From Octopus bimaculoides (taxonomy: Eukaryota): a DNA stretch of 64,000 nt. The notes below the pieces were generated by a model, which saw only the letters and a program-made list of their open reading frames with translations, had not been told where the DNA came from and made no database searches. Shown here piece by piece: positions 1 to 59,887 of this stretch. A program made the position numbers and the translations under genes. Each line of letters starts with the position of its first letter. Position 1 is the stretch's first letter. The stretch is from the NCBI RefSeq assembly GCF_001194135.2, contig NC_068998.1:54246313-54310312 (forward strand). Reading direction: 5' to 3'.

Positions 1-1756
1 ACATAAAAAGCACCATGTTGGTACCATATACAAAAGCGCCCATTTACAAACTGCAAAGTGGTTGACATTAGGAAAGGCATCCAGCTCTAAAAACCATGCC
101 AAACCAGACAATTGAAGCCTGGTGCAGCTCTCCAGCTTACCAACTCCTCCTGTCAAACCATCCAACCCATGCCAGCATGGAAAACAGATAAAGTGCCTAC
201 TGTCATTATGGTAGAGGCTCATTTTAGCACTGCTTAGGAATCCTAATCCTAACCATCACCATCATAATCACAGTATTGGAAATTGTTTCCTTGAAAGTTA
301 AAGATTCTATTGATCGATAATTAAAGCAACTGAAGAATCAAGTTTTGGTTAAGAGGAATTGCTACCATTCAGGAAATTAATCCAGAACTGTTCAGATGCA
401 GGGGAAGCCCATCTTTTTATTTTTCTTCTATGTATTTTCTTTAATTCTTGTTTTGAAATGTGAAAGAACTGAACAAAACTGACAATTCCAAGTAATTTAG
501 AATTAATTTTATGGTTAAATAATAATAATAATAAAGTAATAACACTTAAAAGAAATTGTTTTGTCTTTTGGAAAACAGATTTGTTCTTGGCAATGACAAA
601 ATCTACAATGGCACCAGACTTATAGCAGATATTAACATATATTGAAACCATTAGTGTTCTTGTTCAAAACTCAAAGAATGAAAAAAAGCAATTTTTTTTT
701 TTTGATTCCTTTCATTCCGTAACAAATGATATGAAAGAGAAAAATATGTTCAAATGGTGCTTAAACGTGATTTCTTTGTAAATAAAATTAATTATCAATA
801 TTGCCAACATTTTCCATTGATTTCTTCCAAGGAAATAAGCTAGATGAGCACTGAAGCACATTGACACATATTGAACAGAAAGCCAACAGTTGACCGCAGT
901 AACATTACTCGAATCAACGATTACTCAAAAATTGTAGCAAATATTAAAATAATTTTTGTTTAAAAGATTGTACTGACAAGTTTTACTAAAATAATTCCTT
1001 CATTAAAATTTAAAATTCAATGTAGTTTGTACGGGTGCACATGCATAATTGTTCCCCCTCCCCTCCCACTACAGCTTGACAGCCGGTGTAGGCTTGTTTA
1101 CATCCCACAGCTTAGCACTTCAATAAAAAAACACCAATGGAATAAGTACCAGATTTAATAAAAAAAAAAGCGCTGGGGTCAATTTCTTTGGTTAAACCTT
1201 TCAAGGCAGTGCCCCAGCATGGTCACTGTCCAATGACTAAAACAAGAAAAGAATATCACCAAATTCTCACTGCCTGAATTATCCCCAGAAACAGACAACA
1301 AAACCTGCAAAGATGGGCTTTAACATATAAAAAAAAAAGAAAGACCAGGTCATTTCAAGATGAAAGCATAATTTATGCAGATATTCTCCAAGCAGAGAGA
1401 ATTAAAAAATTTTTGTCTAATAAATGAGATTAACTAAAGCAGAGATAAAAAGAGAAAAAGTAATATTATATTGTTTGTGATAAGGACAGCAGCTCAAATG
1501 TCAAGAACATGAGATGATTGTAAAGTAAGAATTAAGTAAATTCTGAAATGGTAACCAGAATAGAGAAAGGCAAAGAAGAGCTGGAGACCATTCACTGAAT
1601 ATCAGCACCAAGAAGCAGATAAAAATCTCTCTCAACAAAGCATGCTTCTAGTCTTAAATATTTCTAATTTTGGCACAAGGTCAGTCATTTTGATGGAAGC
1701 CAATTATATTGACATCAATGAGCAAGTGGTATGTACTTTATCAACCTTGAAAGCAT

Positions 1757-2250
1757 GAATGACAAAATTGGGCATAAGAGGCATCAGATATGGTGTGCAA
1801 GAGAGACGACTGAGCTGGTTTGATCATGCGATGCGTATGGATGAGGACAGGTGTGTGAAGAAGTACCGATCTCTAACTGTAGAGGGGACCTGTAGAAGAG
1901 AGAGACCCAGGAAGACATGGGACGAGGTGATGAAGCATGATCTTCAAATGTGGAGCCTCAAGGAGGTGATGACAAGTGATTAGGAGCTTTGGTGATTTGC
2001 TGGAGAAGACTTGTGAAGCCAAGTGAAATCATACTTGTGGACAGTGCTAGTGACACATGACAGCATCTATGCTGGTGATATGTAAAAGGCACCTACTACA
2101 CTCTTAGAGTGGTTGGCATTAGGAAGGGCATAAGGCCTTAGAAACCAAGCCAAAATCGGACTGGAATATTCAGCTCTCCGGCATACCAGTTCCTGCCTGT
2201 CTAACTCGTGCCAGCATGGAAAGAAGACATTAAATGATGATGATGATGAT
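1757..2250 (+). mobile_element. RTE-clade LINE 3' end (C-terminus of ORF2 plus 3' tail)
   Basis: ORF 1759..1983 LGIRGIR..VQERRLSWFDHAMRMDEDRCVKK..VEGTCRRERPRKTWDEV matches the RTE ORF2 C-terminus (RL.W.GHV.RM...GRP.KTW). It is followed by the shared tail ending in (GAT)n. Confidence 0.85.
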
Positions 2251-3274
2251 AAGAAGTGAAACAGAAGCAGTACATGTGTTTATTAGAGCAGAATGACCCT
2301 CCCAAGATACAACAAAATAAGGAGCAAAACTCTGCAGCATGATGTCATTAGGTAATGTTAAATGACCAATTTGGAATAGCAGACAATTTCAGTGATACAT
2401 GAAGGAATAATCCTTTCTACTATAGGCACAAGACCCGATATGTTAGGGGAAGGGGCTAATTAATTATATCGACCCAAATGCTCAACTGGAACGTATTTCG
2501 TTGATCCCAGAAGGATGAAAGGCAAAGTCAACCTTGGCAGAATTTGAACTCAGAATATAAAGAGTCAGAAGAAATACAGTAATCCCTCAACTACAGTCCA
2601 AAACCCCTCATCACCAGTAGACTCATTACAGTGCCAGAAAAAAATGCCATAGTACATTTCTTCTAGTTCTTAACATTCCGAGTTCAAATGCTGCTGAGGT
2701 TAATTTTTGCCAATCATCCTTTTGGGGTTTGATAAAATAATAGCAGTTGAAAGCACTCCTGTCAACCTAATTGACTTCCTCCTCCCCTCAAAATAGCTGG
2801 CCTTGTACCAAAATTAGAATTAAAGAGAAACCTGGCTGTTGTTTGTAACAGGTTCAATGACCACACAGAACCACCACCACCACCACCATACAGTGAATGG
2901 TTGTACAGTGTACTAATAACTGAAGATATGGCTCTACTCTAATTATAATAGTGGTCTCTGACAAAAACTGGCTAAACAGAGTCAATGGTGGCAGTCACTC
3001 CTAACTACTCTCTTCTATTTGTTCTCTCAACACAACAACTCCAAACATTTAGCCCAGTGCATTCTATTCCAGCCAACAGACAACCACCCAAGTAGCATTA
3101 AAATATTATGAAGGACAATTTCCAACAAAGACAGTCTATGGATATTGACAAAAACTATTCAAACTATGCTGAATTAATTAAGCTGCCAACAAGTCAATAT
3201 GACTAGACCAGCAGTTCAATAAGATTTATTCATTAACAATTTCTCTTTATATCTATATGCACTGTCAATACATA

Positions 3275-3520
3275 TCATCATCATCATCATCATTTAGTGT
3301 CTGTTTTCGATGCTGGCATGGGTTGGGTGGTATGAGAGGAGCTGGCAAGCCAGAGAGCTGCACCAGGCTCCAGTTGTCTGCTTTAGCATGGTTTCTACAG
3401 CTGGATGCCCTTCCTAATGCCTACCACTTTATAGGGTATACTGGATGCATTTTATGTGGTACCAACATGGGAGATTTTCATGTGGCACCAGCACAGGTGT
3501 TTTTTTTATGCAACACCAGC
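3275..3520 (+). mobile_element. RTE-tail-related short repeat family C (representative copy; biological orientation is probably the reverse)
   Basis: String (CAT)n-ttaacgtcc..ccatgctggcatgggttgga..ctggatgcccttcctaa(t/c)gccaaccac. Copies lie at ~8-190, 5540-5660, 14265-14450, 25665-25890, 27100-27305, 33140-33235, 34752-34890, 47705-47870, 52275-52430 and 58748-58930. The same tail follows the RTE fragment at 1757-2250. Confidence 0.8.
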
Positions 3521-3521
3521 A

Positions 3522-3556
<35 letters not shown>

Positions 3557-4139
3557 CATGAACAAAATTAAAAGAAGTTGTTGGACAGCACAGTGGTCAG
3601 ACATACGATCAAAGCGCTTTCCAATTGTGATCATCCCTTCTTGTTATCAAAACCACATTATTCAACATACCCTCCTACTTTTTTAAGATGCTAGGGCATG
3701 GTTTGAGGGAGATTTGCTGCTATTTCTAAAGCAACAGTGTAAAAGCATTAGCTTATCTAGAAATATCAATAAACTTCAAAATCCCTTAAAATTCAAATGT
3801 AGATGCTTCAATAAAAGTGGATTTGTGATATTTACAACATTATAGAATTAGAGAAAAATTTTAATTAGAATATGTGAATGGCATAACAAATTCCAGCTTT
3901 GATTGTTACCATTTAAAACAAACAAAAGAAAACTAACCTAACACATATGATTGTTTAAATAATGAAATTCAATTTATTGAGATTTCAAACAGTTTTTAAA
4001 AGTTCATACAAACAAAAGGTCAAATACTGTGAAATTTAGTTTAATTAAGTAAATGACATAAATAAAATTATAAAATTACATTTAGGGTCTGAAGACAGGA
4101 AACTTTGAAACGAAATGAAAAATAACACTAATACTTTTT

Positions 4140-4350
4140 ACTAAAGACACAAAGCCTGAAATTTGGGGGGAGGGGACAAGTCGATTACATCGAGTCCAAT
4201 GTTTTATTGGTAATTAATTTATTGACCCCTGAAAGGATGAAAAAGAAAGTTGACCTCGGCAGAATTTGAACTCACAACGATGCAATAGGCGAAATACCGC
4301 TAAGCATTTCATCCAGTGTGCTAACGATTCTGCCAGCTCACCAGCCTAAT
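4140..4350 (-). mobile_element. SINE family A copy
   Basis: Reverse complement of the family A string, ending next to an (AAT)n tract. Confidence 0.8.
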
Positions 4351-4909
4351 AATAATAATAATAACAATATTCAATATTTAATTAATACATGTTGCCAGCC
4401 CCAAATCACACTAAGCAATATCAGTCGACTGGACCTATGGTCAAAGGCATTTCAGCCATCACCAACAGGATGGGAGTCTCTCTAAGGATACTTACAAGTT
4501 GTGTGTGTGTGCGTGTTCCTCTAGAAAGTTGACAGAGATAATGTATGCATTATATTATTCAACCAATGATGGAGGGAGGTAGAGGGTGAAGGAGAAAATC
4601 ATTGAAGAGGGAAAGCAAGAGAAAAAAAGAAGAGTTTGGGTGGTGAAGAGGTTTCACAGCATAAACAAATACACACATAAATACATGCTTGTGGGAAACA
4701 ACAAACTAGACTCCACCCACAAACCCAAACGCAGGCCTAAATGTCAACAGATACCCTCTACACACACATATTGACCTACAAATATCTGTCAATATATTAC
4801 CAACACACACAGTGCTGAAGCACCCTTCACTCACAATTTGTGACAATAAAATTTTTTTCTCTATGGTCTTATATTGCACCTAGCTGTTTACATTAATTTA
4901 TATATACAT

Positions 4910-4962
<53 letters not shown>

Positions 4963-6295
4963 TATAAAGACAGAAGAAACTTATCTATATTTAGGTTGTT
5001 TTGTTTGTTTTTACATATTTGTCCCTTTCCTTTTTATTAATAATAGGTAGTCAATGGTGCAAAAATAGTTGAGGACCACTGTACAGGATCATAAGCCATT
5101 GACTTCCCCTCTGACTAAAAGATAGAAAATATAACTGATATTCATCATAATTAACGACTCCAACTAAATTTTGAGAAAAAAATCTCATTCAAATTGGTCA
5201 TCTTTTTAAATTTGCTTCCATTCTAATTTTTTTTTCTTTTTTAGTTGAAAGGTGTTTTTTACCCAGGTTCAAAGTCATTCCAGTCCTGACCATTCTGTAT
5301 TTTTGTTCAAAAGGAAATTTGGTTACTATTTCTAGCATATCAAAGACCAGGTAGAGATACCACATTCTCTCATGTAGCAATTGTTTAGCCCAGTGACTAT
5401 CAACCATTTTTTACCCATGGACCTCTTTAATTTCTAACCATTCTATATTTTAAAATATCTGACTATATAAATAAAAAGTAAATAGAATCCACTTATTTTC
5501 TGAAGCTCAGTTAAGGACTAAAATATATTCTATAATAACGTTAGGAAGGGCGTCCAGCCATAGAAACCATGCCACAACAGACAATTCGAGGAGTCTGACC
5601 AGCTCTATGTCAAACAGCCCAACCCATGCCAGTATGGAAAACAGACGTTAAATGATGATGACTGACAGTTTTGTCTCTGAAGGAAGCTTGTTTTTGTTCT
5701 TTTTTTTTTTTTTAACGATTCCTTCCTTCTACTAGAGGGAATAATATTCTTGGGCGGATACTTAATTTCTTAATTTTCCTTTTCATGGAATTCATGTTTT
5801 TTATCCTAGTTTTCTAGTTTCTGTTTGTTAAGTTTATTGAATAACAACAAACTGGCTGCCTTTGTTTACAGAGAGCCGTCATCGACCGATACATTTCAAA
5901 GTAAAAAAACATAGTAGAAGTTTAATGATTGTAGCCAGATGGGGAGAAAAACTAATTCTAAGATCGTTTCCTGGTTAGATACTGTTAGAGTGCAAGAGGG
6001 AGGGTAGCAATAGTACCAAAAACAGACATGTTGGTTTAATTTGTTTTAATGTAGATTTATCCGTTTAGTCACATACATAACAATTATCTACATAGCTTGC
6101 TTAGAAGGGAGATGTGTACGAGTACTTTGTTATACTGTTCGGACCCAATTGTGGTCTTCGGAATAATGCAACAGTACCACATTCATTTAGTACAAACACA
6201 CACTTCGTGTTAATACACACACGTCATTTTCTTCCTAAGTAATATAATTCGACAAGTGTACCAAAATGTTCGGATGTGTCAATATATTACACGTA

Positions 6296-6798
6296 CAACA
6301 TCGATTTTCCAGAAACTTTCGTCCCAAAGCCTTTCCAGATCACTGATTTTTCCGAACCAGGAGAAGACGCTTTTGTCACCACAGTCTAAATTAAACAAAT
6401 ATTAAATTTACTGAAATAATTAAATGAAATATGTATCTATCTGTTCGTTAGAATAAACGGGCGAAATTCTGCTTTAAGTACGCCATATATAATCCCTCGT
6501 AACTTTTTATTATTATTTTTTGGAATTTTCAGAAGACTTCTGTAAATGTGTGTTACACTCGGGGATTCATACTGAAAATTCCTAAGAATAAAGAAGTTAT
6601 GAAGGGTTATATGACATGCTTAAAGCAGAATTTCGCCTCCAAAAGATTGCAAGTTTATTAATACGGTACTGCGCAAGGTACTGCCGTGTGACAGGGCCAT
6701 CCAGTAAACTAGTCTCGCAACAGCGAGAGCCCCCTGCTTGTAAATTAGTGCGGATTATAAGGGGTTCCGGACATTCAGTGTCCGGAAAGTCGATGTTG
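6296..6798. repeat. Large degenerate inverted repeat (palindrome) centred near 6547-6552
   Basis: GGCGAAATTCTGCTTTAAG at 6460-6478 is the exact reverse complement of 6619-6637. GGAATTTTCAG at 6522-6532 pairs with 6572-6582. A 22-mer at 6296-6317 pairs with 6777-6798 (19/22). Confidence 0.85.
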
Positions 6799-9039
6799 CC
6801 AACGATTGACCTGAAGCTGACAAAATTGCTATTTATTTCACTTCTTTTGAAACACAAGAATAATGATCTCAGGGGTTGAATATTCCATTCACATAACATG
6901 GTGGATTAATAATTTTGTTCTCGTTTATTAGACACTGTTGTCCTCTATAATTATTACACCCTTGTTTTAATTAGAATAAAGTTGCTAGTATTTTACTGCC
7001 TAAAACCAATCAGTAAATAATTCAACGTATTCGATTTACCTGGTATAAATTTTAGATATCTTATTGAAAATTTATACCAATTGTAGATAAGAAGCAACTG
7101 CAGATAAAAAGAAAACAAGAATAAGAAAATGGGAGGAAGACTGATCGCAGATTTAGAAACTAAGAAAGTAATTTCCTGTTGTAGAATACCCTGATGGCAA
7201 TAGTTTAGATTTATTTACACTCACCACATACACACACGTACATATATGGGGTGGATTCGCAGAATCGTCGGAGCATTTGTTGAGGGAAGGATAACAAGCG
7301 GTATTTTGTTTCGGCTCTTTACGTCCCGAGATCAATTTTGCCTTTCATCCCTCCGAAATCGAGAAAATAAAAGTACCACCCAAGTATTATTAGCCCCAAA
7401 TAAGAAAGCATATATATATATACACACACACACACACGACAAAAAGTTTACAACGTACAATTTTGGTTAAACGATATAGGTATTCATATTTTTGCATTTC
7501 TGTCATAGCGAAAACATAATTTATGATTGTTGAAAGTTGTCAAAGAATCGAGGGACGTATGAAGTAAAAGTAAATGTGTTTTTTTCAATTAAGCTAAATA
7601 TAAACACTTAAAATTAAATATTGCATTTGAAAGGTGGAACATTTCTCAAAGTTTTGAAACATTCTGGTCCTAAAGTTAAGAGCATTTATATATGAATGAT
7701 ATCTACTTTTATATATAATCCAAAATATCTGTCGATTGTTGAAAATTTAAATGGTTTCTATTTTGGCGTCCACTTTCCAACAGTGGAAGACTATTGGACA
7801 GGAGTATGACTTTGTTTATATATTTTAAATTATTCTGAGACGAATTTCATAGCTTTAGCTTAACGATTACTATAAAACGTATTGCTAAATAAATATATAT
7901 TTATGTGTTCTATAAACATAAACACAGTCGGTCAGGTTTTTGCTAATCAATAATCCGCTGATATTGACTGACAGCAGAGAGGAAGGTCTAGAGGAATAAA
8001 TATACAGACTGGGAGGTCATTAACAGGGAAAGGTTACGGTTTCATTAACAGATGATATATTAATATTGTGATTATACAAAGAATACAGCTTGATAACGTT
8101 TGACGATTGAATTTTTGTAAGTTATAACTTGTATGCTGGCTAATATCCAATATAAACAAATATATAATTAATTTTTTTTATTTTTAGAATTGTTTTGCCA
8201 ATAAAATCTAATTAACGAGAGCAAAAATATAGACAAATATGATAATAATAATAATAATGATAATAAAGTCTGCCAATAAGATAAAACTAAAGTAATGTCA
8301 GTTTCTCTCTGAGCTTAATCACTTTTCAATAAAATTGGGTTTTATAGCAAATAAACTTTACAATGACAGACAGAACAGAGAGCCACATCTATACAAACAG
8401 GACTGAATTTTTGACTACAAACAATAAAAAAGAACATTACATCCATTGCTAAGAAGTGTCCAGTACAGGTATTTTAAATAAGTTTGAGACTTCAATAACA
8501 ATTATCTCCACTAGGTGAATGGGTTCATGTATAAACAGACTCAAGATTTAGATATCTGAAGCAAGCTATTGCAATTCTTTAAATATTTTGGTAAATAACT
8601 GGAGCTAATAAAGTAACTTTTAATTGTACGTAATAAAAATTCCAGGTTGAAGGAAATCGGACATTCTAAGAATTAAAAGAAAACATAAGCAACATATTGA
8701 CATATCTCCAGTCTGCACAGATATATATATATATATGGCTATAGGCATAAACATGTAACATATTTCTTTATTCATGATGGTAACAAGACATCCATAAATA
8801 TATTCAGACACATTTAAAGTTTAAAACATAGATCACGAAGAATATATCTAGAAGAGGAATTAACGCAACAGGAAAGACACTTGTGGCTGGAAACGATGCA
8901 AATATTATGTTTGTCTGATGACACAAAGTCATCGACCATAGCAATTAATGACAATTAATACATGGCTTTACAGCGACAGGACATGGGTTTTTCAGCTAAA
9001 TATATCTGAGAATGATGTAGTAAAGTGTTGACAACAAAC

Positions 9040-9124
9040 CAATTGCAATTTGTGAGGCAGCAGAATCGTTGACTCCGGCCAAATAGTTCTCCACAATGTT
9101 ACTCCACGTGCTGGAAGCGGCCAT
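9040..9124 (-). CDS. MMS19: Probable first coding exon of MMS19 (cytosolic Fe-S assembly targeting complex HEAT-repeat protein); the rest of the gene lies left of the window
   Basis: The minus-strand ATG at 9124 reads MAASSTWSNIVENYLAGVNDSAASQIAI+G, followed by donor G|GTTTGT (9040/9039). IVENYLAGVNDSAASQIAIG aligns without gaps to human MMS19 LVHDFVVGQQEGPADQVAAD (recalled sequence). Human MMS19 is head-to-head with UBTD1. Only 28 codons are visible, so the identity is not proven. Confidence 0.75.
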
Positions 9125-9147
9125 TTCTGTCAAGAACACAATAATTC

Positions 9148-9155
9148 TGACGTCA
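9148..9155. promoter_or_regulatory. Palindromic CRE (CREB/ATF) site
   Basis: Perfect TGACGTCA 24 bp upstream of the MMS19 ATG. Confidence 0.55.
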
Positions 9156-9639
9156 TCAATAACAGCGATCTATGACACATACACATACATGCAGCAACAT
9201 CAACACAATGAACCATGCAACACAGACACACATATACACACACACACACACACACGCTTTATAGCTACATTTATACTAAATAAACACATTAAAACCGCTG
9301 ACTTTTTTTTGTAAAAAAATTTCAGATATTTTATATCAAAATATCCGGTTTTGTTTAAATTTAAATTTATGTTATGGAATTTATAGAGAAAAAAAGTGAG
9401 AGAGAGAGAGAGAGAGATCAACAATATTGCAAGTTGCGTTTCTATAAATGTATATATAACATGGCTATAATAAATATTTATTATGGCTGGGTTTAAATAG
9501 TAATAAATGTGTGATGGTTGTATAATGCTGGAGTGGTAAGATAATAAAAGAAGGCATGGTGAGTGTCTGAAGGAGATCCATCAATTTTGACGTATCAAAG
9601 CACGTCCAGAGCTGTGACTGCGAACACACGGCGGCATTG

Positions 9640-9647
9640 TGACGTCA
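9640..9647. promoter_or_regulatory. Palindromic CRE (CREB/ATF) site
   Basis: Perfect TGACGTCA 114 bp upstream of the UBTD ATG. Confidence 0.55.
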
Positions 9648-9761
9648 TCGAACGAGAAGCAGGCAAAGTCGTGGTGGTTGTGATCGGCTGCACTTTGAAG
9701 GGGGTTCCCTCTACAAGCGGATTATTTTGGCTCAACTGTCCTCCACCTTTCCCTGGATGAA

Positions 9762-9828
9762 ATGGGAGGGTGTATTGGAGCACACAGAGACAACGGGCCA
9801 CCCTCTGGAGAATCTTCTGATGTCACGG
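9762..9828 (+). CDS. UBTD1/UBTD2: UBTD coding exon 1 ([22 protein letters not shown] + G), with N-terminal MGGC myristoylation/palmitoylation-type motif
   Basis: The ATG is in strong context (gaaATGg) and the donor is G|GTAGGC at 9828/9829. G+TT from exon 2 gives Val and restores the frame. It is not in the ORF track because it is short. Confidence 0.92.
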
Positions 9829-12166
9829 GTAGGCTAAAACATTGGCTATATTTCCTGTTTGTTTATGATCCTTCCTTCTCTCAGCTGAGTTGTTGATTGT
9901 AGCAGCGCTCACCATAATTCACACTTCACAGCCACAAAAAATATCTCTTCTTTATTCTTCTTCTTCTGAAATACCTTACCAAAGAACACAAATACCATTA
10001 AATTCCCTAACCCTATTTATTTTTATTTATTCCAAACCTATCTCCATATACACACACATCCACATTTAATTCATTTATTTACTTGTACATTTCTGTCGCC
10101 GTATTCTCGTTTTTTCTTCCATCTGCTCTCTTTCTTATCTCCTCTAAGTGCTTTTTCTAGTGTTTAATTAACCACCACTGCTGCACACGCTTCAAATTTA
10201 TCAAATTTTATCTTTTAACTGAATAACTAAATAATAAAAGGGGGGCAAAAAAGCCACCACATTATATTCACAACTCGTTTAATGGTTTCACCGTTTTAGT
10301 AACAATGACTGAAAGGACAGCAAGTTGCTTGTCTCTTCATACATACGTGTCTCTCATGTCGTTGCTTCTACATTTATATCATCATATCGTATCACATCTA
10401 TAAGACCATGAAATATCTCCACAACTACAAATATACACAGATTTAGTTAAGACTAAACTAAGCTGGCTGCTCTCCTATAAAACCTCTTCCACGCTTCGAA
10501 AATACAAGAAACACCATCATTACTTCCTACTTTACTGCCATTTATTTGTTTTATTTTCCCCGCATTTTTTATTTTATTTATACTTGATAGGATTTTATTT
10601 CCAGAACCAAAGAAATATTTACTTCAGAGAATAAAAAAAAAAAGATAAAATTGCAAAACAATGAGATTAAATGAAATAATATTAAACCCCCAACCTTGGT
10701 GTTACTTAATGAGACACTGATCAACTTAGTGTCTGCTTTACATCGATATTTTACCAATTTCTCTACACGCATCCTATGTCTGCAGGTCTGACTGGCTGTT
10801 TGCAGTTTTAACATTTTTTTTCACTATTTTCGGAACAATTAAAATTTTTTTTTCATTGTAATTCATTATATCTCTTTCCTTTCTAATTAAGCACCACCTT
10901 CTAGAAGACCTGTCTCTCTCTCTCTTTCTCCTTCTCTGCTTTTATGTCCACACAAGTCTGCAAGAAAAAAAGAATTCTTCTCTGTTCTGACATTCAAGAA
11001 ACAGTGAAATAAAGGAAATAAATTTAAAAAATAACAAAGCTTGGATTCTACAATTTTTTTTGTCTATTGTAAAAGTCTTTTGTGAGCAGAATTGTTGACC
11101 AAGTCGAGTAAAGATCTCTTTATAGAACTACAGTTATTCCTTATAGAACTAAACTATTTGACTCGCTTTCATTGAAATTTTCTAACTTATTCTTCTTGTG
11201 CCATACATTGAATTAATTTTTTTTTCTTTTTTCGGTTTCCTTCTTTAGGACTATTTTCCATTTGGGAGAAATTACTATTTCCATAGTTATCAAATCATCC
11301 ACCAATTTTTTGTTATCAAATCCTCCTCTTATTTTTTCTGATATAAAATTCTGCATGATAAACTCTGAATATTATTATCAGCATGTGTAGAGCATGTTTG
11401 CCCTAAATCGGTGCTACAGTCGTCGGACAGCCAGCTTTTGGCCATCGCCGTTGCTTTATTCTATCCCATCCCACTGCCATATTTTGAAAGCAACAAGATC
11501 TTTATCCCCTCATTCCTCCTCCTTGTCAGAGCTCGCCACATTTTCTTGCCAATTTTGACTCTGATTCCCACTCTCTCCCTCACACATGCCAGAACCACTG
11601 GGCCATTTACTCTTCTGTGATGCCAGCATTCTTCTTGGATAAAAGGGGGAACTAGCATGGCCAAAAAAATCATTGATTGGTATCTATCTCGAACCATAAT
11701 GTTGCTGCTGAAGAGATGATGTCTGATAAATGTCCTAGCTTATTTACCACTAACAGATTTTTGGTTTGGCATTTTTTAAATGTTTATGCCTTTATATTAG
11801 CTCTTATTATATTCACACGTCTTTCTACCAGATTTTTTTCCACCAATATGCACGATATCAGTTTTTAAAAACTAAAACACCATTTAAACTCGATATTATA
11901 TAAGAAACGCCTTTTATTTTCTTCGTTATCAATCACCCCCAATCGTATAAAAAAAAATTGTTGGCATTAATTTTGGGGGTCTAAATTTTTTTTTTCTCTT
12001 TATTTAGTTAAATCTTTTGTTTCGGTATTCCGTTCAGGAACTCAGTGTTTCAGACTTGCCAATAGTTTAGACAAGACTGCAATGTGCTCACACAATTCAA
12101 CATCCTGTACATATTAAATCCAACTTGAAGAAGCTATAGATAGATGATACATGCATAGATAGATAA

Positions 12167-12197
<31 letters not shown>

Positions 12198-15100
12198 GAT
12201 AGACTGACGTAGATATTTAATTAATTTCTATTATTGACCAAGAGATTTCATAATCTGTTGTTTTTGGCATTATACTTCTAATTTTTGTTTATAATTTTGT
12301 CATATTTTTCTAAAGAATAACGAGAAAAAAATCTTGGAAGTAAAAATAATTGAGCTTTAAAAGGAGAATTGTGGTTGAAACTTTTCGTTTTGTTTTTTCC
12401 TTTGTTATTTTTTTTGCTCTTTGGAATTGCTGTGTGTAGAGGAAGTGAAGAAGAAAAGCACATTGGTCCTAAAAGCATATTATAATGACTCATAATATAT
12501 AACCTTATGATATAGAGTTCAATTTTTGTATTGTGGACAGTTGTGTTTGTATTTATGCTGTCGTCGGGAAAATAGGCACGTGGGGGGGGGGGCACAAGAT
12601 ACATGCCATTGAAGCTAAGAATTTTCAAACTTAATAATATAGTATATTACTCAACTTTTGGCATTCAAGTACTGTTTTTCTCTCCTTGTTTTACACCTAT
12701 GTGCTTATTTGTTTGTGTGTATATATACACACACATGCAAACACACAAACCTTGCTGAACTCAGTTGGAAAATTTGAGTTGCTGTGGTTGTTTCAGCCCC
12801 AGACTAGTTCTATTCGAAATAATTCTAGCAATGGTCATTCTCTCTTATTTCTGAATACCCTATCCAAGACTACATTATGAAATGTTTTTGCTTTCTTTTT
12901 GTTTTTCTTTCTTTCCGTTTTAAGATAAAATGATGTGTTTATAAGGGAGGACTTTTGTGTGCTGTTTCCAGCAGGTGGAAGGGGCGCATTCCAACCACCC
13001 TTCACCTTCTTGGCTCGGTTGATGAAAGAGAGAAAGATACCAATAAGTTTTATTCAATACATACTGAACCAATATGAATTCTTGTCATAATATCGATTCC
13101 CAACATTGGCACAAGGCCACACGTGCGGGGGAGGGTTTCGTGAAGCAATAACCACAAACAATACTTACGAAGACATAAATGCAGTTTAGTGCCCTCCCTC
13201 AGTTTGCCTCCTCCTCCTCATAACTTCTTCGAAAAATGCATATATTTTAATGAAATTTGGCAGAGATATGTTATCGATGGTGTAGGTTGCGATTAAGTTG
13301 ACAAAATTTCTTATTATTATTAAACCAGAATCGTTAGCATGCCGGGCAAAATGCTTAGCAACATTTCGTCCGTCTTTACATTGTAAGTTTAACTTCTGCC
13401 GAGGTCGACTTTGCCTTTCATCCTTCGGAGTCGATAAAATAAGTACCAGTTACGCATTACTGTCAATGTAATCGGCTTTCCTCCTCTTGTGCTAAAATTT
13501 GAAATCATCATCATTATTATTTATTATTATTTCTCTTTTTTGTGAGGACGACTAAGCGAACCATTTTTTTCTTGCCTGCAGATTTCCTCGTAACTCTCTT
13601 TAAAACGCATGCCTTTAAATAACATTTTGCTGGAATATGTTTTCGGGCGTATCGATTATTTAATGTTGATGTTTCAAACATAACTAAAACGGAAGGGGAG
13701 AAAAATACGCGGAAAATTACCTGAAACTTCACATTTTTTCCTTCTTAAATTTAATCCACATAATAACCCCACGCAAATCTCATTAAAAGTATGCGTTTTT
13801 CATTAAGTTCTGAGGAAACGGTCAAAGGGCACCAAGTTGTAGCTATGAACACACACGCACACATTTCCATCCTTCATCATCGTCATTTTAACGTCCACTC
13901 TTCCATGCTGGAATGGGTCGGAAGAAGTAAATTGAAGCAGGTGCTTTTCCTGTTGCCATCCCCCACCTGTTTCCAAGCAAGGTAATATTTCCCCTCCATG
14001 GCCAGAGAGAATATTGAAAATGAACAACACTGCTTGTATGACAGTGATAATCATTTACAACTACCATGTGATGTTAGGACAAGGACACACGCATACACAC
14101 AAAGTTTTCACCTTCCAGATCCAATCTCAACGTTTTGGTTTGCCCAGGGCTGTGGTTATAGTAAATGTGCCACACAGTGGGACTGAACCCAGAACTATGT
14201 GGTTGGTGAACAAACTTCTTTCCATACAACCATACCTGCACCTCTGTGTGTGAATGAGTGCATTGTCATCAGTTGATGTCTGTTTTTCATGCTGGCTTGG
14301 GTTGTGCAGTTTACAGGAACTGGCAATGCAGAGAACTGCCCCAGGCTCTGTTGCTTTGACACGGTTTCTACAGTTGGATGCCCTTCCTAAAGCCAACCAC
14401 TTTACACTGTGTACTGGGTGCTTTTACATGGCACCAGCACAAGTGGGGTAACCAAGTGACTTGTATTATGAAGGCCATTCAGCTAGGACAGGGAGTAAAC
14501 ACTAGCGACATAGACAAAACAGTGTGTGAAGGAAAGCAAAAAACATCTCATAATTTGACAGATGGAGGTATGGCTTAGTGATTTCTACCAAGTTTAGTTA
14601 TTTTTTTTATATATATAGTGAATTAGTCATTCCCAAAGTTTCCAAAGACAGGAGTACCTAAAACTTGCCTGTTTTCTACCAATGTGACAAAAGATATAAA
14701 CACACACACACATACACATACAGGACAGCCTCCCACGTGGTTTCTGCTTAGCAAATGTATCTCAGAAAGTGTTGGTGGACCAAGAAATATACTTGTCCAA
14801 GATGCTGTACAATGGAGTCAAAATAGGAACCAAAGAATTCTGAAGCATAATTCTTTGCTACGCAGCCACAACTTAGCCCAAAGTATTTTTATTTTACCAA
14901 ATTTGGAAGGATGGAAGACAAAGTTGACATCAATCACCGATGCCATCATGGAAAAACAGATGTTAAATGATGGTCGACATCATTTTGTTTGACTCTCTTT
15001 ATGGTTCTGTTGTTGTTTAGTCCAGGTCAACCTTGCATCAAGCAAACCTTATATCGGTCATTCCAGCCATGATCATCCTGTCTTTTTCTTATATGCAAGG

Positions 15101-26400: not shown

Positions 26401-27627
26401 AGTCTCCGTATTTGTTGATATTCTCTGTGTTCAAATTCTGTGAAGAAGTGACATGGCCAGGTGAATATGTTGTTGATTTTCCTGGCCAGTTCTTACTGTA
26501 TGTCAACATTCGGTTTTCAATCAATCTTGTCTTGTCCCATTTGAAAATAATTATCATTAACACTAATGGTTAATTGGGGAGTTATTATGGAAGTATATTA
26601 AAAATTTTCTTTAGCAAACTATATTGTTAACTATGTGCTCTTCATGCAGAAAGCATCCCTGAGAAGCTTTCCCATGTCACCTTTTTTAAAAAAGTCACTG
26701 TTCTCTCCTCCCCCCATTATTGACATATCTCTGCTATACATTGCCTCACTTGTGTATGGCTGAAGGGCAACAATGATGTTCACTCTTCTGGATGTTGCAC
26801 ACCAGAAATAATAAAACAGTTTCTTATGCAGAGACTGGAGACTGTTTTTAGAATCCTTTTGTCATCCAGCAGCTGGAAAAAATGTTAGAATCTCCCAACA
26901 TTTAATTTTGATAATCTTTACCTTGAGAGTTCATTTCGGCACCATGTTACCATCTTTATCCTCTCTCTCAGCTACTCTAACCCACCCTTATCTCATGCAG
27001 GGTAACCATGTACTTCCCTCATAGCAAGACACCTGGTATAAACCTACCCCCACCTTCCCCCTCTCGAGTATTTGTGTTTTGTGTCTGTCTACGAATTTAC
27101 TTGGTGACTTGTGCCAGTGGTGCCATGTTAAAAGCACCCAATACACACTGTGAAGTGGTTGGTGTTGGGAAGGGCATCCAGCCATGGAACCCTTGCCAGA
27201 GTTGACAATGGAGCTCAGCACAGCCCCCGCAGCTCGGTGGATCCTGTCAAACCATCCGACCCATGCCGGCATGGAAAGTAGAAATTAAATGATGTTGATG
27301 ATTATTGATGATCTGGCAGAATCGTTAGCATGCCAGACAAAGCATTTCAGCCACCTTTTATGTTCTGAGTTCAAATTCTGCCAAGGTTGACTTTGTCCTT
27401 CATCCTTTTGGGGGTCAACAAAACAAGTATCAGTTGGACATTGGGGTCGATGTAATCAATTTACCCCCTCTTCCAAAATTGTGCCAAGATTAGAAAGGAT
27501 TATCATTATTATTTACCTCTATGCAGCGGAAGCAATTTAAGAATCTGACATGATACACACACCAAGAATTTAAATGCCATAGATTATGAAATTATGACCC
27601 CCCTCCCCCCCTCTCTCNNNNNNNNNN

Positions 27628-50605: not shown

Positions 50606-53328
50606 CACACATATATATATATATACACACATATATATATATACACACACATATATATATATATACACACATACATATATATATATATATGTATACACAT
50701 ACATATATATATATAGCTTTATGTATATATTTCTCTGCCTGCATGTATGTGTGCATTTGTCTCCAGTGCCAAACCAGGTTCATTGTCAAGTCGGCTGTGC
50801 CAGATTGCCAGCGACCAAACAACTGTGCCCAGTTGTCTCGTTCTATAAAAGCACACAATCTCATTAGTCTGCACAATGACTAAATTTGATGGATTCTCTT
50901 CAGATCTGGAGGCCATGAATTACAGAACCCATTGGCCGATGCCGGTCATCTCTGTAGACTTTATCTTAAAGCTGTGTTTCAAAGAAAAACAGTCATCTAT
51001 TTTACACTGCATTCATTGTTGATGTTGCTGTTGTTGATGATGATATAATCAAATTGGAGAGGTATGATGAAACAGAAGCCTGCTTTTTCCCCCCACCCCA
51101 TCTTATGGCTATAATCATAGCAAAAATATAAATGTGTACATTTAAGTTTTAAAAATTGGGTCACATATTTGTGACGGTAATGGGGGCAGAGGAGAGGCAA
51201 ATACCTCCAGGCAATTTGGCTTTGTTGCTTTCTCTTTTTTAATATCGTTGAAGATACAACAATGTGCAGCACTTTGTACAGGGTCGTTGCGTCTGCTAGA
51301 AATAGTAGCTAAATCTCTTATGAATCACCTTAACCCTTTTGTTACCGTATTTCAGTTGAGAAGCTCTCTGTTTCATTCAATTAATTTAAAATATAATAAA
51401 GAATTTAGTAAAATAACTTCATTATCATTCAGCTAGTGTTAGGAACATAAACTGGGACTAAGGTTTGGGTGGAAGAACTTTTGAAAGCAAGACATTTGTA
51501 CTCGAGAGCCAGGGGCGGTTTCATCCGGGTTGGTATCGAAAGTGTTAAAAAGGGATGGAGACATTTGATAATGTGGTCCTACAAAGTGTCTAAAAACAAA
51601 TTGAGTCAGAGACTGTTAAACCTTTCATTTATGTAAGTCTGTGCAATCTGTAGCTGAGTTCATGTTATTGTTGAATTATTTTTACAGCTTTTCTCCCCTC
51701 TTCAAGTTTCTATTTTTATTTTTGGATATTTCCGAGATAATTGATTTTTCTACGAGATAGGCTTCACAAACTTCAGCACTCTGTCGAGATATAAGGGTGC
51801 TGACCCTGTTTCCATTTAAAGCAAGCTGAAACAAGACAGGTTGTTGTCCATTGCCTAATAGCACAACACACAAGGGGAGATGACGACGACAAGGATGATT
51901 GTAATAATAAGATTTTACTGCTTAATCATGTGATCTGCTATCTAATAGCCTGACCTTGTGGCTATTATATCTTTTGAAACTGCTATAATTTATAAATAAA
52001 TACTTCAAGCAGACCAGATATCTTTTTAACCTATTATTTCATTATCAAAAAACGTGCATAAAACTGAATGTTTTAGTTAAGTCAATATTTAGCGAAAATG
52101 TTCTTTGAATTTGCAGTCAACCCAAGGAACTCATTGGGAAGTTGTTTTGCTCTGGTTTTGTTGTTATTGTTTAACTCAGGATTAGCTCTGATTAAGCCAG
52201 CCTTGAATTAATCCTTTTCTTACCATTTTCCTATTGGAATACACTGCCTTTGTTTCAATTAATTTCAATGGCCTCACTAATGCTGATGGCAGGAAAAAGG
52301 CACCCAGTATATACTGTAAAGTGGTTGGCATTAGGAAGGGCATCCAACCATAGAAAGCATACCAAAGCAGACAGTGGGGCATGACCCCTTGGATTCTGTC
52401 AAACCACCCGTCTCATACCAGCATGGATAAATAGTTCAATATTCAATGAAGTCATTAGTGCATAATTTCCTTTTCAATGGAATTTATTTTCTTCTGAATG
52501 TGGTTTCAAAAAATTCTTTAAAATATTTGATTTATGGTTTTTCAAAATGGTTTCTTCATTGAAACTCAGAACAAATGATCAGCTGAGATTTCGGAAGCCT
52601 TCACCTTCCAAATCCCGTTGCTGTTTCTCATAATTTACTTTGACAATGATGTATTGGATGATGGAATGGCAGAGTATTGGGACAAAATGCATTACAGGTA
52701 CCAAACCTCTTATTCACAATCCAGAAATCCAGCTGTCTTTGAATTTCGTGGGCTGTAGTAGTTCACCGCACAACCACTTTGTATTGGTTTCCAGGGCACA
52801 TGCGTCACACAATGCCAGATCAAACAGACCCTGCTTTAGAAATGTATTAATTTGTATATGTTATACAATTTTGTTCTTTATTTTGCGTTGTTTATTTTGT
52901 ATTTTCGGTACGTATTCGGCGGCCTGTGTCCAGGAATCACAAAACACGATTTGCATTCATCCTGTCTCCTGCTCTGACCTAAACTGTTTTTTCCCCCTCT
53001 TTTGTTTCCAGTTTCTATTGGACGAAACCAACCCCTGAAACCAGAGAAACCTAAATGGAAAAGTGATGTTCCATTGACTGAAGGACAGCTCAGAAGTAAA
53101 AGAGATGAATTCTGGGACACAGCCCCTGCATTTGAAGGCAGAAAAGAGATCTGGGATGCACTTAAAGCTGCTGCGTATGCTCTGGAAACCGGAGACCATT
53201 CACTAGCTCAAGCCATCGTTGATGGAGCCAATATATCATTACCAAATGGTAAGTTTATTCCATAACTTTACCCTGATTGAGTTTAATGAACCAGGGATTT
53301 CACCATGTAGCTACTTCTTAATGACTCT

Positions 53329-57369: not shown

Positions 57370-59887
57370 AAATGTCTGTGTTTGGAAAACAGGAAATAGA
57401 GATGAAGTAACATCCAACAATTGCAGGACTGAGGCTGCTTGAAGGAATTCTGGATTTTACCATTCATGGGATCTATTTTATGGTTGTTGTTGTTTAGCCC
57501 CAGGTCTTCCCTAATCAAGTGGGCCTATGTTCTGAGGTATTGCAGACATGACCATCATGTCTGTCTTTAAAATAGGGGTGTATTTATGATTGTATAATTA
57601 TCCAAAGTGTCCCGCTTTTTTTTAAGATGGTAGGGTGTGTTTTGAGGGAAATTTTCAAGTGGTTTGAGCAACTGCCTAGAAGCCATGTAGTTATTAATAC
57701 ACTCGACAAGAGGAGCTGTCAGCCAGGAAGTTATCCAGGCTAAACAAGCTTCTGTGACAGCTTTGCTTTACAATAATAATAATAATAATAAAATTTTAAA
57801 AATTATCATACAATGATGTACCATAATACTAGCTATGGCACCAAAAATTTGGAGAGACAAACTGTTTGAGATAAAGATTACCCAGGCATCAGGAGGCAGA
57901 GAACCATGGCTAAGGTGTCTGTATATTGTGTGTCATCATTGTTTAACATCCACCTTCCATGCTGGCATGGGTTGGACAGTTTGACAGGAGCCAGCCAGGT
58001 AGAAGACTACACCAGGTTACTGCGTCTAAAATTCTTCTTCCGGTTTCTGCTGCCTCTTGTTATTATGGGTCTTATATCAGTTGAAGATTTCAATAGAGTT
58101 AATGGCCCCGTTTAATAAATATTCCAGCAAGTTTGTCTGAATATTTAATAGTTGGCTTAGATTTATATTACACTTTGAGCAGCTGAAGTTTCTTACTTGC
58201 CATGGCAGCTCAGGAGATATTTCTCTGTAATACTTCCAACCTGTGTGATCTTAGTTCCTTTCAAATTATTCTAAAAAGCAGAAAGGTTTTAAGTGAGAAT
58301 ATCCTGTTTCAATCCCAAAACCAAGATGCTTACCTGAATGTAACTCTCATTGTGCACATATATATTGTTCATGAGGGAAGAAGGTCTGTAAGCTGATGGA
58401 AAGCAGACGCATGTATACGCATTCTCTCAAAAGCCAACAGAGCTAATCAACACAGCATTGCTCAAGAAATACGGAGACACACACTGACAAAAGCATGATG
58501 CCTTTTAGAGAAATATTTATGAGCCGAGTAGAGATTTAATGAATATTTAATGGGAACCTTTGAAGGAGAGAGTCTGTTTCTTTGATACTTGTAGTTGTAC
58601 ATGGAAAACTTTGCCTTAGATATTCTTTTGACAAAAGTTACACAGAAGAAGTGGGCGTAGAATAAAACAAATTTCTCTCGCAATTGCATTTACTGGAATT
58701 TCAGCCACCTTATTGACTGAAGGTAGAGTAGTATGTTTGATTTCAAGTCATCATCATCATCATCATTTAACATCCATTTTCCATGTTGGCATAGGTTGAA
58801 TGGTTTGATGGGAGCTGGCAAACCAGAGGATTGCACCAGGCTCCAATTGTTTGTTTTGGCAGGGTTTTTACAGCTGGATGCCCTTCCTAACGCCAACCAC
58901 TTTACAGTGTGCTAGGTGCTTTTTCCATGACACATCCCCCCATAACTTAGCAGTTCCATAAGAGACGAATACAATAAGTCCTAGGGTCAATTTATTCAGC
59001 CAAAATCTTCGAGGTGATGCACCAGCATGGCCACACTCCAAAGACTGAAACAAGTAAAACGTTATCCTTTTGGGGGTGAAGGGGTTCAAGAGAGTAGGGT
59101 GCCATTTGAGTGGGATTTGATTGCTATTTCTAGCAAGTGGAGTGTGACAGTTTTTAGTTGTTTAATAATTTCATCAAAAAACTCAACTTTTTGTTGTTGT
59201 TGTTGTTGTTAGTCTTCCCAAGAAATCTCCTAGATTGTGACTGAACCTACTTAGAATCACATGGACATGTCTTAAGAATTAACTGACCATCTACTTCATT
59301 TAATAGGTCTTCTCAGTCTAAGCTGACCACGTCCATTCAGGACCAGCAGCAACAACAACAAGGTAGTGTTTGTGGACCAGAAATAACTGCTGCTGTGTAA
59401 CCTCAATACAAATCTATTATCATCAACTAATAACTAATCAATACCCTTGGTTTACAATTGCTAATCTCAATGTGTTTGCTCTATTTTAGGTACTTTAATG
59501 GACTGCTACGATGAACTAGGCAATCGATATCAACTTCCTGTGTATGTGTTAAGTGCCCCGACCAATTTAATTGAGGAAGTCAGTGACAGTGATACAATAC
59601 AAGATGCAGACTCGGCGTCCCCTGGTCTGGAACTACCAATCAAATTCCGTCTTTCACACACTAATAAAGACTTAAAGTTGTACGTTCGAACAACGGACAC
59701 TGTATGGAAAGTTAAGAAAAGAATATTCGAAGAAGAAGGCATAGATCCTTCTCGTCAGCGATGGTTTTTCTCTGGTCGACTCCTTAGTGATAAAATGAAA
59801 ATTGAAGACACAAAAATTTCCAAAGGATTTGTAGTACAAGTCATTGTATCGCCATCTCCATGTAATCCAGCTGGTGACCATGCTTAA
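9762..59887 (+). CDS. UBTD1/UBTD2: Ubiquitin domain-containing protein (UBTD1/UBTD2, DC-UbP family), complete 3-exon CDS join(9762..9828,53012..53248,59490..59887), 233 aa
   Basis: The spliced CDS is 67+237+398=702 nt and open from ATG to TAA. Both introns are GT-AG and phase 1. The protein [41 protein letters not shown]...[15 protein letters not shown]...[14 protein letters not shown]...[11 protein letters not shown]...FVVQVIV matches, from recall, human UBTD2 ([25 protein letters not shown]..). Invertebrates have one co-orthologue of UBTD1 and UBTD2. Confidence 0.97.
12156..12202. repeat. (GATA)n microsatellite
   Basis: Directly visible tandem TAGA units with two TAAA interruptions. Confidence 0.95.
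13325..13505 (+). mobile_element. tRNA-derived SINE family A (representative copy)
   Basis: Conserved string gaatcgttagc..aaatgcttagc..gccgaggtcgactttgcctttcatcc..gataaaataagtacc. Other copies lie at approximately 2415-2575(-), 2655-2820(+), 4140-4350(-), 7255-7380(+), 27312-27505(+), 30140-30270(-), 33617-33835(+), 39170-39310(+), 40960-41140(+), 54525-54735(-), 61510-61690(+) and 61930-62110(+). Confidence 0.85.
13830..14245 (-). mobile_element. Composite tRNA-headed SINE family B (head + middle module + (GAT)n tail), representative copy
   Basis: The head tggctgtgtggtaagaagcttgcttcccaaccacatggtt..gggttcagtcccactg recurs at ~14715-14875(-), 16190-16340(-), 29010-29150(-), 31635-31880(+), 32520-32880(+), 36215-36600(-), 37130-37460(+), 42412-42612(+), 44235-44400(+), 45365-45660(+) and 55765-55910(+). 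The middle module ggtaatatttcccc..ggccagacatg recurs with it. Confidence 0.8.
15540..16010 (-). mobile_element. Tc1/mariner transposase catalytic-domain fragment
   Basis: Across frameshifts the minus strand reads [44 protein letters not shown] and [27 protein letters not shown]. Confidence 0.85.
16440..16780 (-). mobile_element. Highly decayed RTE-like LINE C-terminal fragment
   Basis: [23 protein letters not shown] resembles the RTE motif ILQGKI.GRR.RGRP..RWLDNI. Confidence 0.45.
18075..18490 (-). mobile_element. Decayed RTE LINE ORF2 C-terminal fragment
   Basis: The minus strand contains, with stops and frameshifts, VMLHG, L.W.G and GRGRQRKTW-like motifs. Confidence 0.65.
20917..21130. 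repeat. (GT)n and (CT)n microsatellites
   Basis: (TG)n at ~20919-20957 and (CT)n at ~21080-21130. Confidence 0.95.
21780..22400 (-). mobile_element. Decayed LINE (RTE-like) apurinic endonuclease-domain fragment
   Basis: The minus strand gives [15 protein letters not shown] (compare YAPT..SSEEEKDAF) and [14 protein letters not shown] (compare W.HP....QID). Confidence 0.45.
22440..22552 (-). mobile_element. Mariner transposase N-terminal HTH fragment
   Basis: The minus strand from ATG 22552 reads [34 protein letters not shown], a typical mariner N-terminus (KEHxRHILLYEF..G..A....RNI..V.G). Confidence 0.75.
29610..29860 (+). mobile_element. Degenerate tRNA-headed SINE with an ancient core-like domain
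   Basis: Head ggcctggtggttagagt..ggtttcaactcctgg, then gcattccatctcgggg..tcagtcactcatacacc..ggaaactg..taagctctg, resembling widely distributed metazoan SINE cores (recall only). Confidence 0.4.
33617..33835 (+). mobile_element. SINE family A copy
   Basis: Near full-length copy following a (TTA)n tract. Confidence 0.8.
36215..36600 (-). mobile_element. Composite SINE family B copy
   Basis: Head at ~36600-36430 and middle module at ~36420-36240. Confidence 0.75.
37130..37460 (+). mobile_element. Composite SINE family B copy
   Basis: Head at ~37130-37300 and middle module at ~37320-37460. Confidence 0.75.
38114..38281 (+). mobile_element. RTE LINE reverse-transcriptase fragment
   Basis: [50 protein letters not shown] corresponds to the RT motif F.DLEKAFDRVP..LIWW. 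Confidence 0.8.
39480..39707 (-). mobile_element. tRNA-headed SINE-like element with a hammerhead-ribozyme-like (Penelope-type) 3' module
   Basis: On the minus strand: a tRNA-like head with A box TGGTGTAGTGG (39701-39691) and B box GTTCGATTCC (39656-39647), then an (AAT/GAT)n spacer, then GACAC-CTGATGA-A-GGCTG..CAGCC-GAAAC-GTGTT (39563-39521). Confidence 0.7.
41584..42122. other. Assembly gap (539 N)
   Basis: Run of n. Other large gaps are at 40284-40374, 56063-56684 and 63162-63289, and there are many 10-N gaps. Confidence 1.
49198..50170 (-). mobile_element. Decayed Tc1/mariner DNA transposon (near-complete transposase with stops and a deletion)
   Basis: The minus strand reads ...[21 protein letters not shown] (HTH), [46 protein letters not shown] and [41 protein letters not shown]-like end CAGGGTGAGGCAGAAAGGACGG starts at 50170; the matching end was not seen. 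Confidence 0.9.
50390..50716. repeat. Compound (CT)n/(TA)n/(CA)n microsatellite block
   Basis: Directly visible; it generates several spurious YI/IY ORFs. Confidence 0.95.
53012..53248 (+). CDS. UBTD1/UBTD2: UBTD coding exon 2 (N-terminal ubiquitin-binding domain)
   Basis: A pyrimidine tract ends in ttccAG at 53010-53011 and the donor G|GTAAGT is at 53248/53249. It encodes [78 protein letters not shown] (ORF 53002..53265). Confidence 0.98.
54525..54735 (-). mobile_element. SINE family A copy (UBTD intron 2)
   Basis: Reverse complement of the family A string. Confidence 0.8.
56063..56684. other. Assembly gap (622 N) flanked by an exact 100-bp duplication
   Basis: 55963-56062 is identical to 56685-56784. 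Confidence 0.95.
59490..59887 (+). CDS. UBTD1/UBTD2: UBTD coding exon 3 (end of UBD plus C-terminal ubiquitin-like domain, stop)
   Basis: The acceptor ttttAG is at 59488-59489. It encodes [24 protein letters not shown]...[48 protein letters not shown] (ORF 59498..59887). Confidence 0.98.

Follow-up and report, generated by a model that had tools for sequence, protein, structure and literature searches.

In a 64,000-bp stretch of the Octopus bimaculoides genome (hereafter the window), the minus-strand segment 9124–9040 is the first coding exon of MMS19, which lies head-to-head with UBTD, the start codons of the two genes being separated by 637 bp. In the cytosolic iron-sulfur assembly (CIA) targeting complex, MMS19 acts as the HEAT-repeat adaptor. 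The window matched O. bimaculoides assembly GCA_001194135.2, sequence CM046618.1, with 0 mismatches over its 64,000 bases. We consider it very probable (about 0.93) that octopus MMS19 begins at this exon, that it diverges from UBTD at this distance and that the arrangement was inherited from the bilaterian ancestor. What has held the two genes together since then is a separate matter and is weighed after the evidence for the exon and for the age of the pair.

The first coding exon of octopus MMS19

The minus-strand ATG at 9124–9122 stands in a strong Kozak context (ACAGAAATGG) in the sequence itself, and is the first ATG of its frame, since a stop codon interrupts that frame 16 codons upstream. 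The frame reads MAASSTWSNIVENYLAGVNDSAASQIAI, that is 28 codons plus one base (G at 9040), and is followed by the donor G/GTTTGT, whose GT occupies 9039–9038, so that the exon ends in phase 1. A preliminary description of the locus had given the same start codon, codon count, donor phase and 637-bp distance to the UBTD ATG, and direct reading of the sequence bore out all four. It had also remarked that the exon was missing from the open reading frame (ORF) track; this is true, but it reflects only a prokaryote-style ORF list, and the eukaryotic annotation contains the exon.

In O. sinensis, O. vulgaris and O. bimaculoides alike, the annotated minus-strand gene upstream of UBTD has a coding sequence (CDS) boundary that coincides base for base with the candidate ATG, at 9317, 9312 and 9363 in the respective locus listings (L010, L011 and L012, the last being offset from the window by 239). 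The listed gene ranges match the start codons exactly on both sides and are thus CDS ranges. The product of this gene in O. sinensis and O. vulgaris is a protein of 1023 aa with the domains MMS19_N (PF14500) and MMS19_C (PF12460), both of which are encoded outside the window, and the O. bimaculoides model, 110 aa in length, reaches MMS19_N. The exon peptide is identical across the three octopuses, with one synonymous change in the underlying codons.

Exon 1 of MMS19 is 82 nt long and ends in phase 1 in the chiton Liolophura, the annelid Owenia, the hemichordate Ptychodera, the sea urchin Lytechinus and the limpet Lottia. The octopus exon, at 85 nt, is one codon longer and ends in the same phase. 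Across species the aligned exons follow the pattern M-A-A..W...[VAI]-E-[ND]-Y-[VIL].G......I..G. A register of 20 ungapped residues against human MMS19, on which the preliminary description had leaned, recurs in this multi-species alignment, but taken alone the human match is at noise level (E = 9.8 with tblastn).

A hidden Markov model (HMM) profile was built from four non-octopus MMS19 exon 1 sequences and searched against the 2836 stop-free segments of the window. The octopus exon took rank 1 of the 2836 (E = 0.004), and the same profile recovered the unannotated Lottia exon in the limpet MMS19–UBTD gap (E = 0.0007) and gave no E-value lower than 1.5 in the three control loci without MMS19. 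A stricter test was restricted to the 201 candidates on either strand of the window that run from an ATG to a phase-1 donor over 76–91 nt, each scored by its mean global BLOSUM62 alignment to five genuine MMS19 exons 1. The octopus exon scored 40.8, within the range of the genuine exons among themselves (35.8–51.8), and the runner-up scored 9.8; none of 5000 shuffles reached 40.8. Annotation in three octopus genomes, agreement in length, phase and sequence with five invertebrates, and both scoring tests thus converge on the assignment to MMS19 exon 1 that had been made from the sequence.

Pairwise and library searches with so short a peptide returned little. Human MMS19, UBTD1 and UBTD2 sequences served as search probes only. 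With the MMS19 probe, tblastn against the window gave noise, the exon being fourth among the noise matches. When the exon was compared by tblastn with the chiton, limpet and cuttlefish loci, the result was likewise noise and the orthologous chiton exon was not singled out, because 28 aa is too short for BLAST. A Protein Data Bank search with the exon peptide gave no match. A word-index search of a 5.8-billion-protein set with the 42-aa read-through ORF gave no candidate; since the gene is annotated in octopus genomes, this counts as a false negative. A large-database search with the core of Lottia MMS19 returned five short fragments only. Exhaustive phmmer with a 30-aa peptide against 1.84 billion representatives produced a single match, P0126, and no octopus MMS19. 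P0126 is an unannotated ORF of 316 aa carrying five tandem 23-aa repeats (MDTVCSSETWANICQSYIASALT); its E-value was inflated by five copies of a weak 19-aa match, and we judged the resemblance a coincidence.

Invertebrate profiles and the human probe found no MMS19 exon 2, 3 or 4 in the window, with nothing below E = 0.14. These exons therefore lie outside it and MMS19 intron 1 exceeds 9 kb, a size that is unremarkable beside the 43-kb intron 1 of UBTD. Coordinates are collected in Table 1.

Table 1. Features of the MMS19–UBTD locus in window coordinates, with the basis of each call.
Feature	Position	Strand	Basis or remark
Start of MMS19 intron 1	1–9037	-	exon 2–4 profiles and human probe without match; annotated gene extends past the 10-kb flank
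GT donor of MMS19 intron 1 (TTG/GTTTGT)	9038–9039	-	intron position and phase match chiton, limpet, annelid, hemichordate and urchin MMS19
MMS19 coding exon 1	9040–9124	-	sequence; annotated CDS start in three octopuses; profile rank 1; global score
Intergenic region, putative bidirectional promoter	9125–9761	.	exactly 637 bp between start codons
Palindromic cyclic AMP response element (CRE), TGACGTCA	9148–9155	.	24 bp upstream of MMS19 ATG; kept only in the three octopuses, which are close relatives
CpG-rich, GC-rich promoter-like stretch	9561–9761	.	GC 0.51; CpG observed/expected 0.84
Palindromic CRE, TGACGTCA	9640–9647	.	122 bp upstream of UBTD ATG
UBTD coding exon 1	9762–9828	+	starts MGGCIG; phase-1 end; assembled protein equals annotated octopus UBTD2-like
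UBTD coding exon 2	53012–53248	+	tblastn E = 2e-42; splice reconstruction
UBTD coding exon 3, with stop codon	59490–59887	+	tblastn E = 1e-41; splice reconstruction; gene end agrees with O. bimaculoides annotation

Distribution and age of the head-to-head pair

UBTD orthologues of bilaterian animals were used as handles for a survey in which the 10 kb upstream of each gene was examined, the UBTD ATG being position 10001 of each locus. MMS19 and UBTD were head-to-head in Liolophura (285 bp between start codons), Owenia (302 bp), Lottia (542 bp, measured from the true exon 1), Ptychodera (651 bp), the three octopus species (637–688 bp) and Lytechinus (8.3 kb). In the gecko Sphaerodactylus the partner was UBTD1, at a start-codon gap of 4.3 kb, and an ankyrin-repeat gene followed downstream, like human ANKRD2. 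All pair-bearing loci had MMS19 on the minus strand and UBTD on the plus strand (5'-5'), with no gene in between. In the amphioxus Branchiostoma lanceolatum there was no MMS19 upstream of UBTD and a different, same-strand gene stood in its place, and in the spider Parasteatoda MMS19 was not adjacent to UBTD. The expectation that the adjacency would recur in other animals therefore held in chiton, limpet, annelid, hemichordate, urchin and gecko, and failed in amphioxus and spider.

Human MMS19 is divergently adjacent to UBTD1, as the preliminary description had stated: the human gene order is EXOSC1-ZDHHC16-MMS19-UBTD1 (PMC6563950), and the two genes are catalogued as divergently paired with 112 bp between their transcription start sites (TSSs) (PMC3815023 Table S1).

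The same partners, in the same orientation and at similar spacing, occur in Lophotrochozoa, Ambulacraria and vertebrates, so that a single origin followed by at least two later losses is the parsimonious account, and the head-to-head pair most likely predates the protostome/deuterostome split. The age proposed for the unit in the preliminary description thus agrees with its occurrence across three classes of mollusc and in annelid, hemichordate, sea urchin and gecko. The pair may have arisen earlier still, the sampling having covered bilaterians. Separate assembly of the arrangement in protostomes and in deuterostomes might be argued from the absence of the pair in amphioxus and spider and from a sample confined to bilaterians, but we consider it practically excluded: two losses make a far more economical account than repeated assembly of one and the same pair, and orientation, partners, a spacing of 286–652 bp (in molluscs, annelid and hemichordate) and a CRE upstream of UBTD are held in common.

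The vertebrate duplicates of UBTD bear on which locus is the ancestral one. UBTD is single-copy in octopus, and across its two large exons the octopus protein is 82% and 58% identical to human UBTD2 and 78% and 50% identical to UBTD1. In amphioxus, UBTD is followed by a same-strand kinase gene with Pkinase and PKK domains, of SLK/STK10 type (L004:19060-23922), and in the spider it is preceded by a 207-aa EF-hand gene (L009:1-5401). Human chromosome 5 carries the order STK10-EFCAB9-UBTD2 (PMC7581054). Taken with the amphioxus UBTD–kinase linkage, this order makes it seem that each vertebrate duplicate keeps part of the old neighbourhood, and suggests that both retain pieces of it, the outcome that whole-genome duplication would lead one to expect; what survives at the UBTD2 locus may be a different part from that preserved by UBTD1. 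The preliminary description had singled out UBTD1, not UBTD2, as the holder of the ancestral locus. Linkage of UBTD1 to MMS19, here seen in gecko, stands in favour of that idea, but UBTD2 lies beside STK10-EFCAB9 and octopus UBTD is the nearer to UBTD2, so the idea as stated is too simple and not supported.

The intergenic region and competing explanations

The 637-bp gap was ~95% identical across the three octopuses, microsatellite length aside. CpG is not depleted in it: the window as a whole has a GC content of 0.35 and a CpG observed/expected ratio of 0.33, against the higher values of the promoter-like stretch in Table 1, and the 200-bp windows beginning at 9551 and 9601 have the top CpG count in the 64 kb. 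With start codons 637 bp apart, the two TSSs would lie less than 1 kb apart unless upstream non-coding exons exist.

The CRE octamer TGACGTCA was the sole 8-mer common to all five short MMS19–UBTD gaps, compared with a background density of about 0.03 per kb. Its distance upstream of the UBTD ATG was 122 bp in octopus, 123 bp in Lottia, 90 bp in Liolophura, 82 bp in Owenia, 128 bp in Ptychodera and 142 bp in amphioxus, and it was absent within 1 kb of the UBTD start in urchin, gecko and spider. Since the element also precedes amphioxus UBTD, where MMS19 is not adjacent, it is best described as an ancient proximal-promoter element of UBTD and is no proof of joint control.

Under the explanation we prefer for the locus as a whole, a short CpG-rich gap with a CRE by each start codon would form either a bidirectional promoter or two tightly abutting ones. 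The pair would then have been kept in molluscs, annelid, hemichordate, echinoderm and vertebrates (there as MMS19–UBTD1) and broken in some lineages, probably because a gap so short could not be broken without harm to one promoter or to both. Whether MMS19 and UBTD genuinely share regulation, rather than being merely interleaved physically, appears to us evenly balanced. It is improbable that the pair amounts to a regulatory module under constraint for over 550 million years, in which a CRE-bearing bidirectional promoter co-ordinates an Fe-S adaptor with a ubiquitin-pathway adaptor; were it so, the module would point to an unrecognised link of UBTD proteins to cytosolic Fe-S protein maturation or to MMS19 turnover. 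A functional connection of UBTD to Fe-S delivery is speculative, and we give it slightly less credence still.

The strongest competitor, to which we assign a little under an even chance, is that the pair is real and ancient but has been kept by neutral inertia, a gap of a few hundred bases leaving little room for a harmless breakpoint. Several observations that weigh against shared regulation fit this account. The pair is broken in amphioxus and spider, where both genes are presumably functional; the CRE remains in amphioxus with UBTD alone; and the gap has widened to 8.3 kb in urchin and 4.3 kb in gecko with the pair still intact. Coleoid genomes, moreover, hold as many ancient microsyntenies as that of the scallop, Euprymna keeping 275 ancient metazoan microsyntenies compared with 216 in scallop (PMC9023564), so that survival of the pair in a coleoid is not unusual in itself. 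The losses in amphioxus and spider likewise imply that the constraint on the pair is not absolute. The suggestion in the preliminary description that survival in a rearranged coleoid genome is a sign of regulatory constraint was, for both of these reasons, not upheld. Against inertia, most gene order is scrambled over such a time, and among pairs that stay together 5'-5' orientation and co-expression are strongly over-represented (PMC3514665); at least seven of the lineages sampled still have the pair, and the human TSS distance of 112 bp is typical of truly bidirectional promoters.

A different kind of objection concerns the exon itself, which might be a relic or belong to another transcript, with MMS19 starting elsewhere and the gene models being artefacts propagated between octopus annotations. 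Four points tell against our assignment from this side. The link from the 9040 donor to further MMS19 exons is drawn from public gene models; exon 1 is the only MMS19 exon inside the window; the O. bimaculoides model stops at 110 aa; and neither protein-library search gave an octopus MMS19 with this N-terminus. The last is presumably explained by the searching of cluster representatives only, in which case little can be concluded when these libraries return nothing for a short N-terminal peptide. Three separately annotated assemblies share the CDS start at this ATG, however, and even the 110-aa model reaches MMS19_N; the exon agrees in length, phase and sequence with MMS19 exon 1 of five distant species; it stands in its expected place beside UBTD; and its peptide is unchanged among the three octopuses. 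We therefore hold a relic or annotation artefact to be very unlikely. That chance produced both the ORF and its likeness to MMS19, as the noise-level human match and the failure of BLAST to single out the chiton exon might suggest, is already refuted by the profile and global-score tests together with the kept phase, length, position and annotation.

Known gene pairs, the UBTD gene and minor features

The nearest known system is the human MMS19–UBTD1 pair at 10q24 (PMC3815023, PMC6563950), which comprises the same orthologues in 5'-5' orientation across a short gap (112 bp between TSSs in human, 637 bp between ATGs in octopus). The vertebrate pair is further likened to the octopus one by the phase-1 end of MMS19 exon 1, common to octopus and gecko. 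It differs in that octopus has one UBTD, closer to UBTD2, whereas vertebrates have two, of which only UBTD1 keeps MMS19, and in that octopus introns are much larger (43 kb for UBTD intron 1, more than 9 kb for MMS19 intron 1).

Conserved ancestral microsyntenic pairs (CAMPs) were described by Irimia et al. 2012; in that survey 55% of them are 5'-5' and their signature is attributed to shared promoters or co-regulation (PMC3514665). MMS19–UBTD shows the features of this class, namely adjacency in several distant lineages and a kept 5'-5' orientation. Like the archetype HSPD1–HSPE1, it is a non-paralogous pair adjacent across distant phyla with a short 5'-5' gap (PMC3514665), but HSPD1–HSPE1 is nearly universal, whereas MMS19–UBTD was lost in amphioxus and spider. 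The pair also resembles the coleoid microsyntenies of Schmidbaur et al. 2022 (PMC9023564) as an ancient linkage that survived large-scale reorganisation of the coleoid genome. The blocks in that study require at least three genes, which places a two-gene pair outside their definition, and neither MMS19 nor UBTD is named in those of its supplements that were examined (PMC9023564). In literature mentioning both genes we found no discussion of MMS19–UBTD synteny.

Because the octopus gene start is already in public annotation, a published catalogue lists the human pair and 5'-5' pairs are a described class, the finding is correct but ordinary. It reveals no new gene, mechanism or class of genome feature, and its significance is modest. 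The small additions that it makes are the shared architecture of exon 1, the spread of the pair among animals and the retention of the CRE. They define a clean, well-dated head-to-head two-gene unit surviving since the bilaterian ancestor, with an exon 1 of 82–85 nt ending in phase 1 and, in six lineages, a perfectly kept CRE ~100 bp before the UBTD start. Such a unit could serve as a test case of persistence through shared promoters as opposed to a gap too small to break.

The three UBTD exons were located with the human UBTD1 and UBTD2 probes, and their spliced product of 233 aa was identical to the annotated UBTD2-like protein of O. vulgaris, O. bimaculoides and O. sinensis. This protein retrieved more than 1000 UBTD proteins carrying the UBD (PF16455) and ubiquitin (PF00240) Pfam domains. 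It has the composition of the family, with a UBD domain followed by a ubiquitin-like domain and an N-terminal MG..(C).G motif. An out-of-frame upstream ATG at 9757–9759, 5 nt before the UBTD start (GGATGAAATGG), is present in all three octopuses and may open a small overlapping upstream ORF.

Three public gene models look incomplete and are flagged here. For O. bimaculoides MMS19 the model has 110 aa, where those of its congeners have 1023 aa. In Lottia the first exons are missing from the MMS19 model (L002 7727-9458, 843 aa), the true exon 1 being at L002 9458-9377. In Acanthosepion the UBTD model, of 335 aa, is without the true first exon, and its contig also lacks UBTD exon 1, which makes the synteny there uninformative.

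Within the octopus gap, (CA)n and (GA)n microsatellites lie at ~9233–9256 and ~9397–9419, and the longer gaps of O. sinensis (683 bp) and O. vulgaris (688 bp) are due to a (GATA)n/(GA)n expansion. Rfam and ARAGORN tRNA scans of the window gave no match. A second match to the exon-1 profile, at 14187–14273 on the plus strand with a nearly equal E-value, was rejected as a 10-residue partial match with no Met, inside a dispersed repeat. This repeat, the source of the spurious match, occurs at least 10 times in the window (71–89% identity) and gives ORF-like translations; its copies include 14100–14450, 3287–3467, 58760–58933, 2070–2240, 52272–52381 and 27107–27201, among others.

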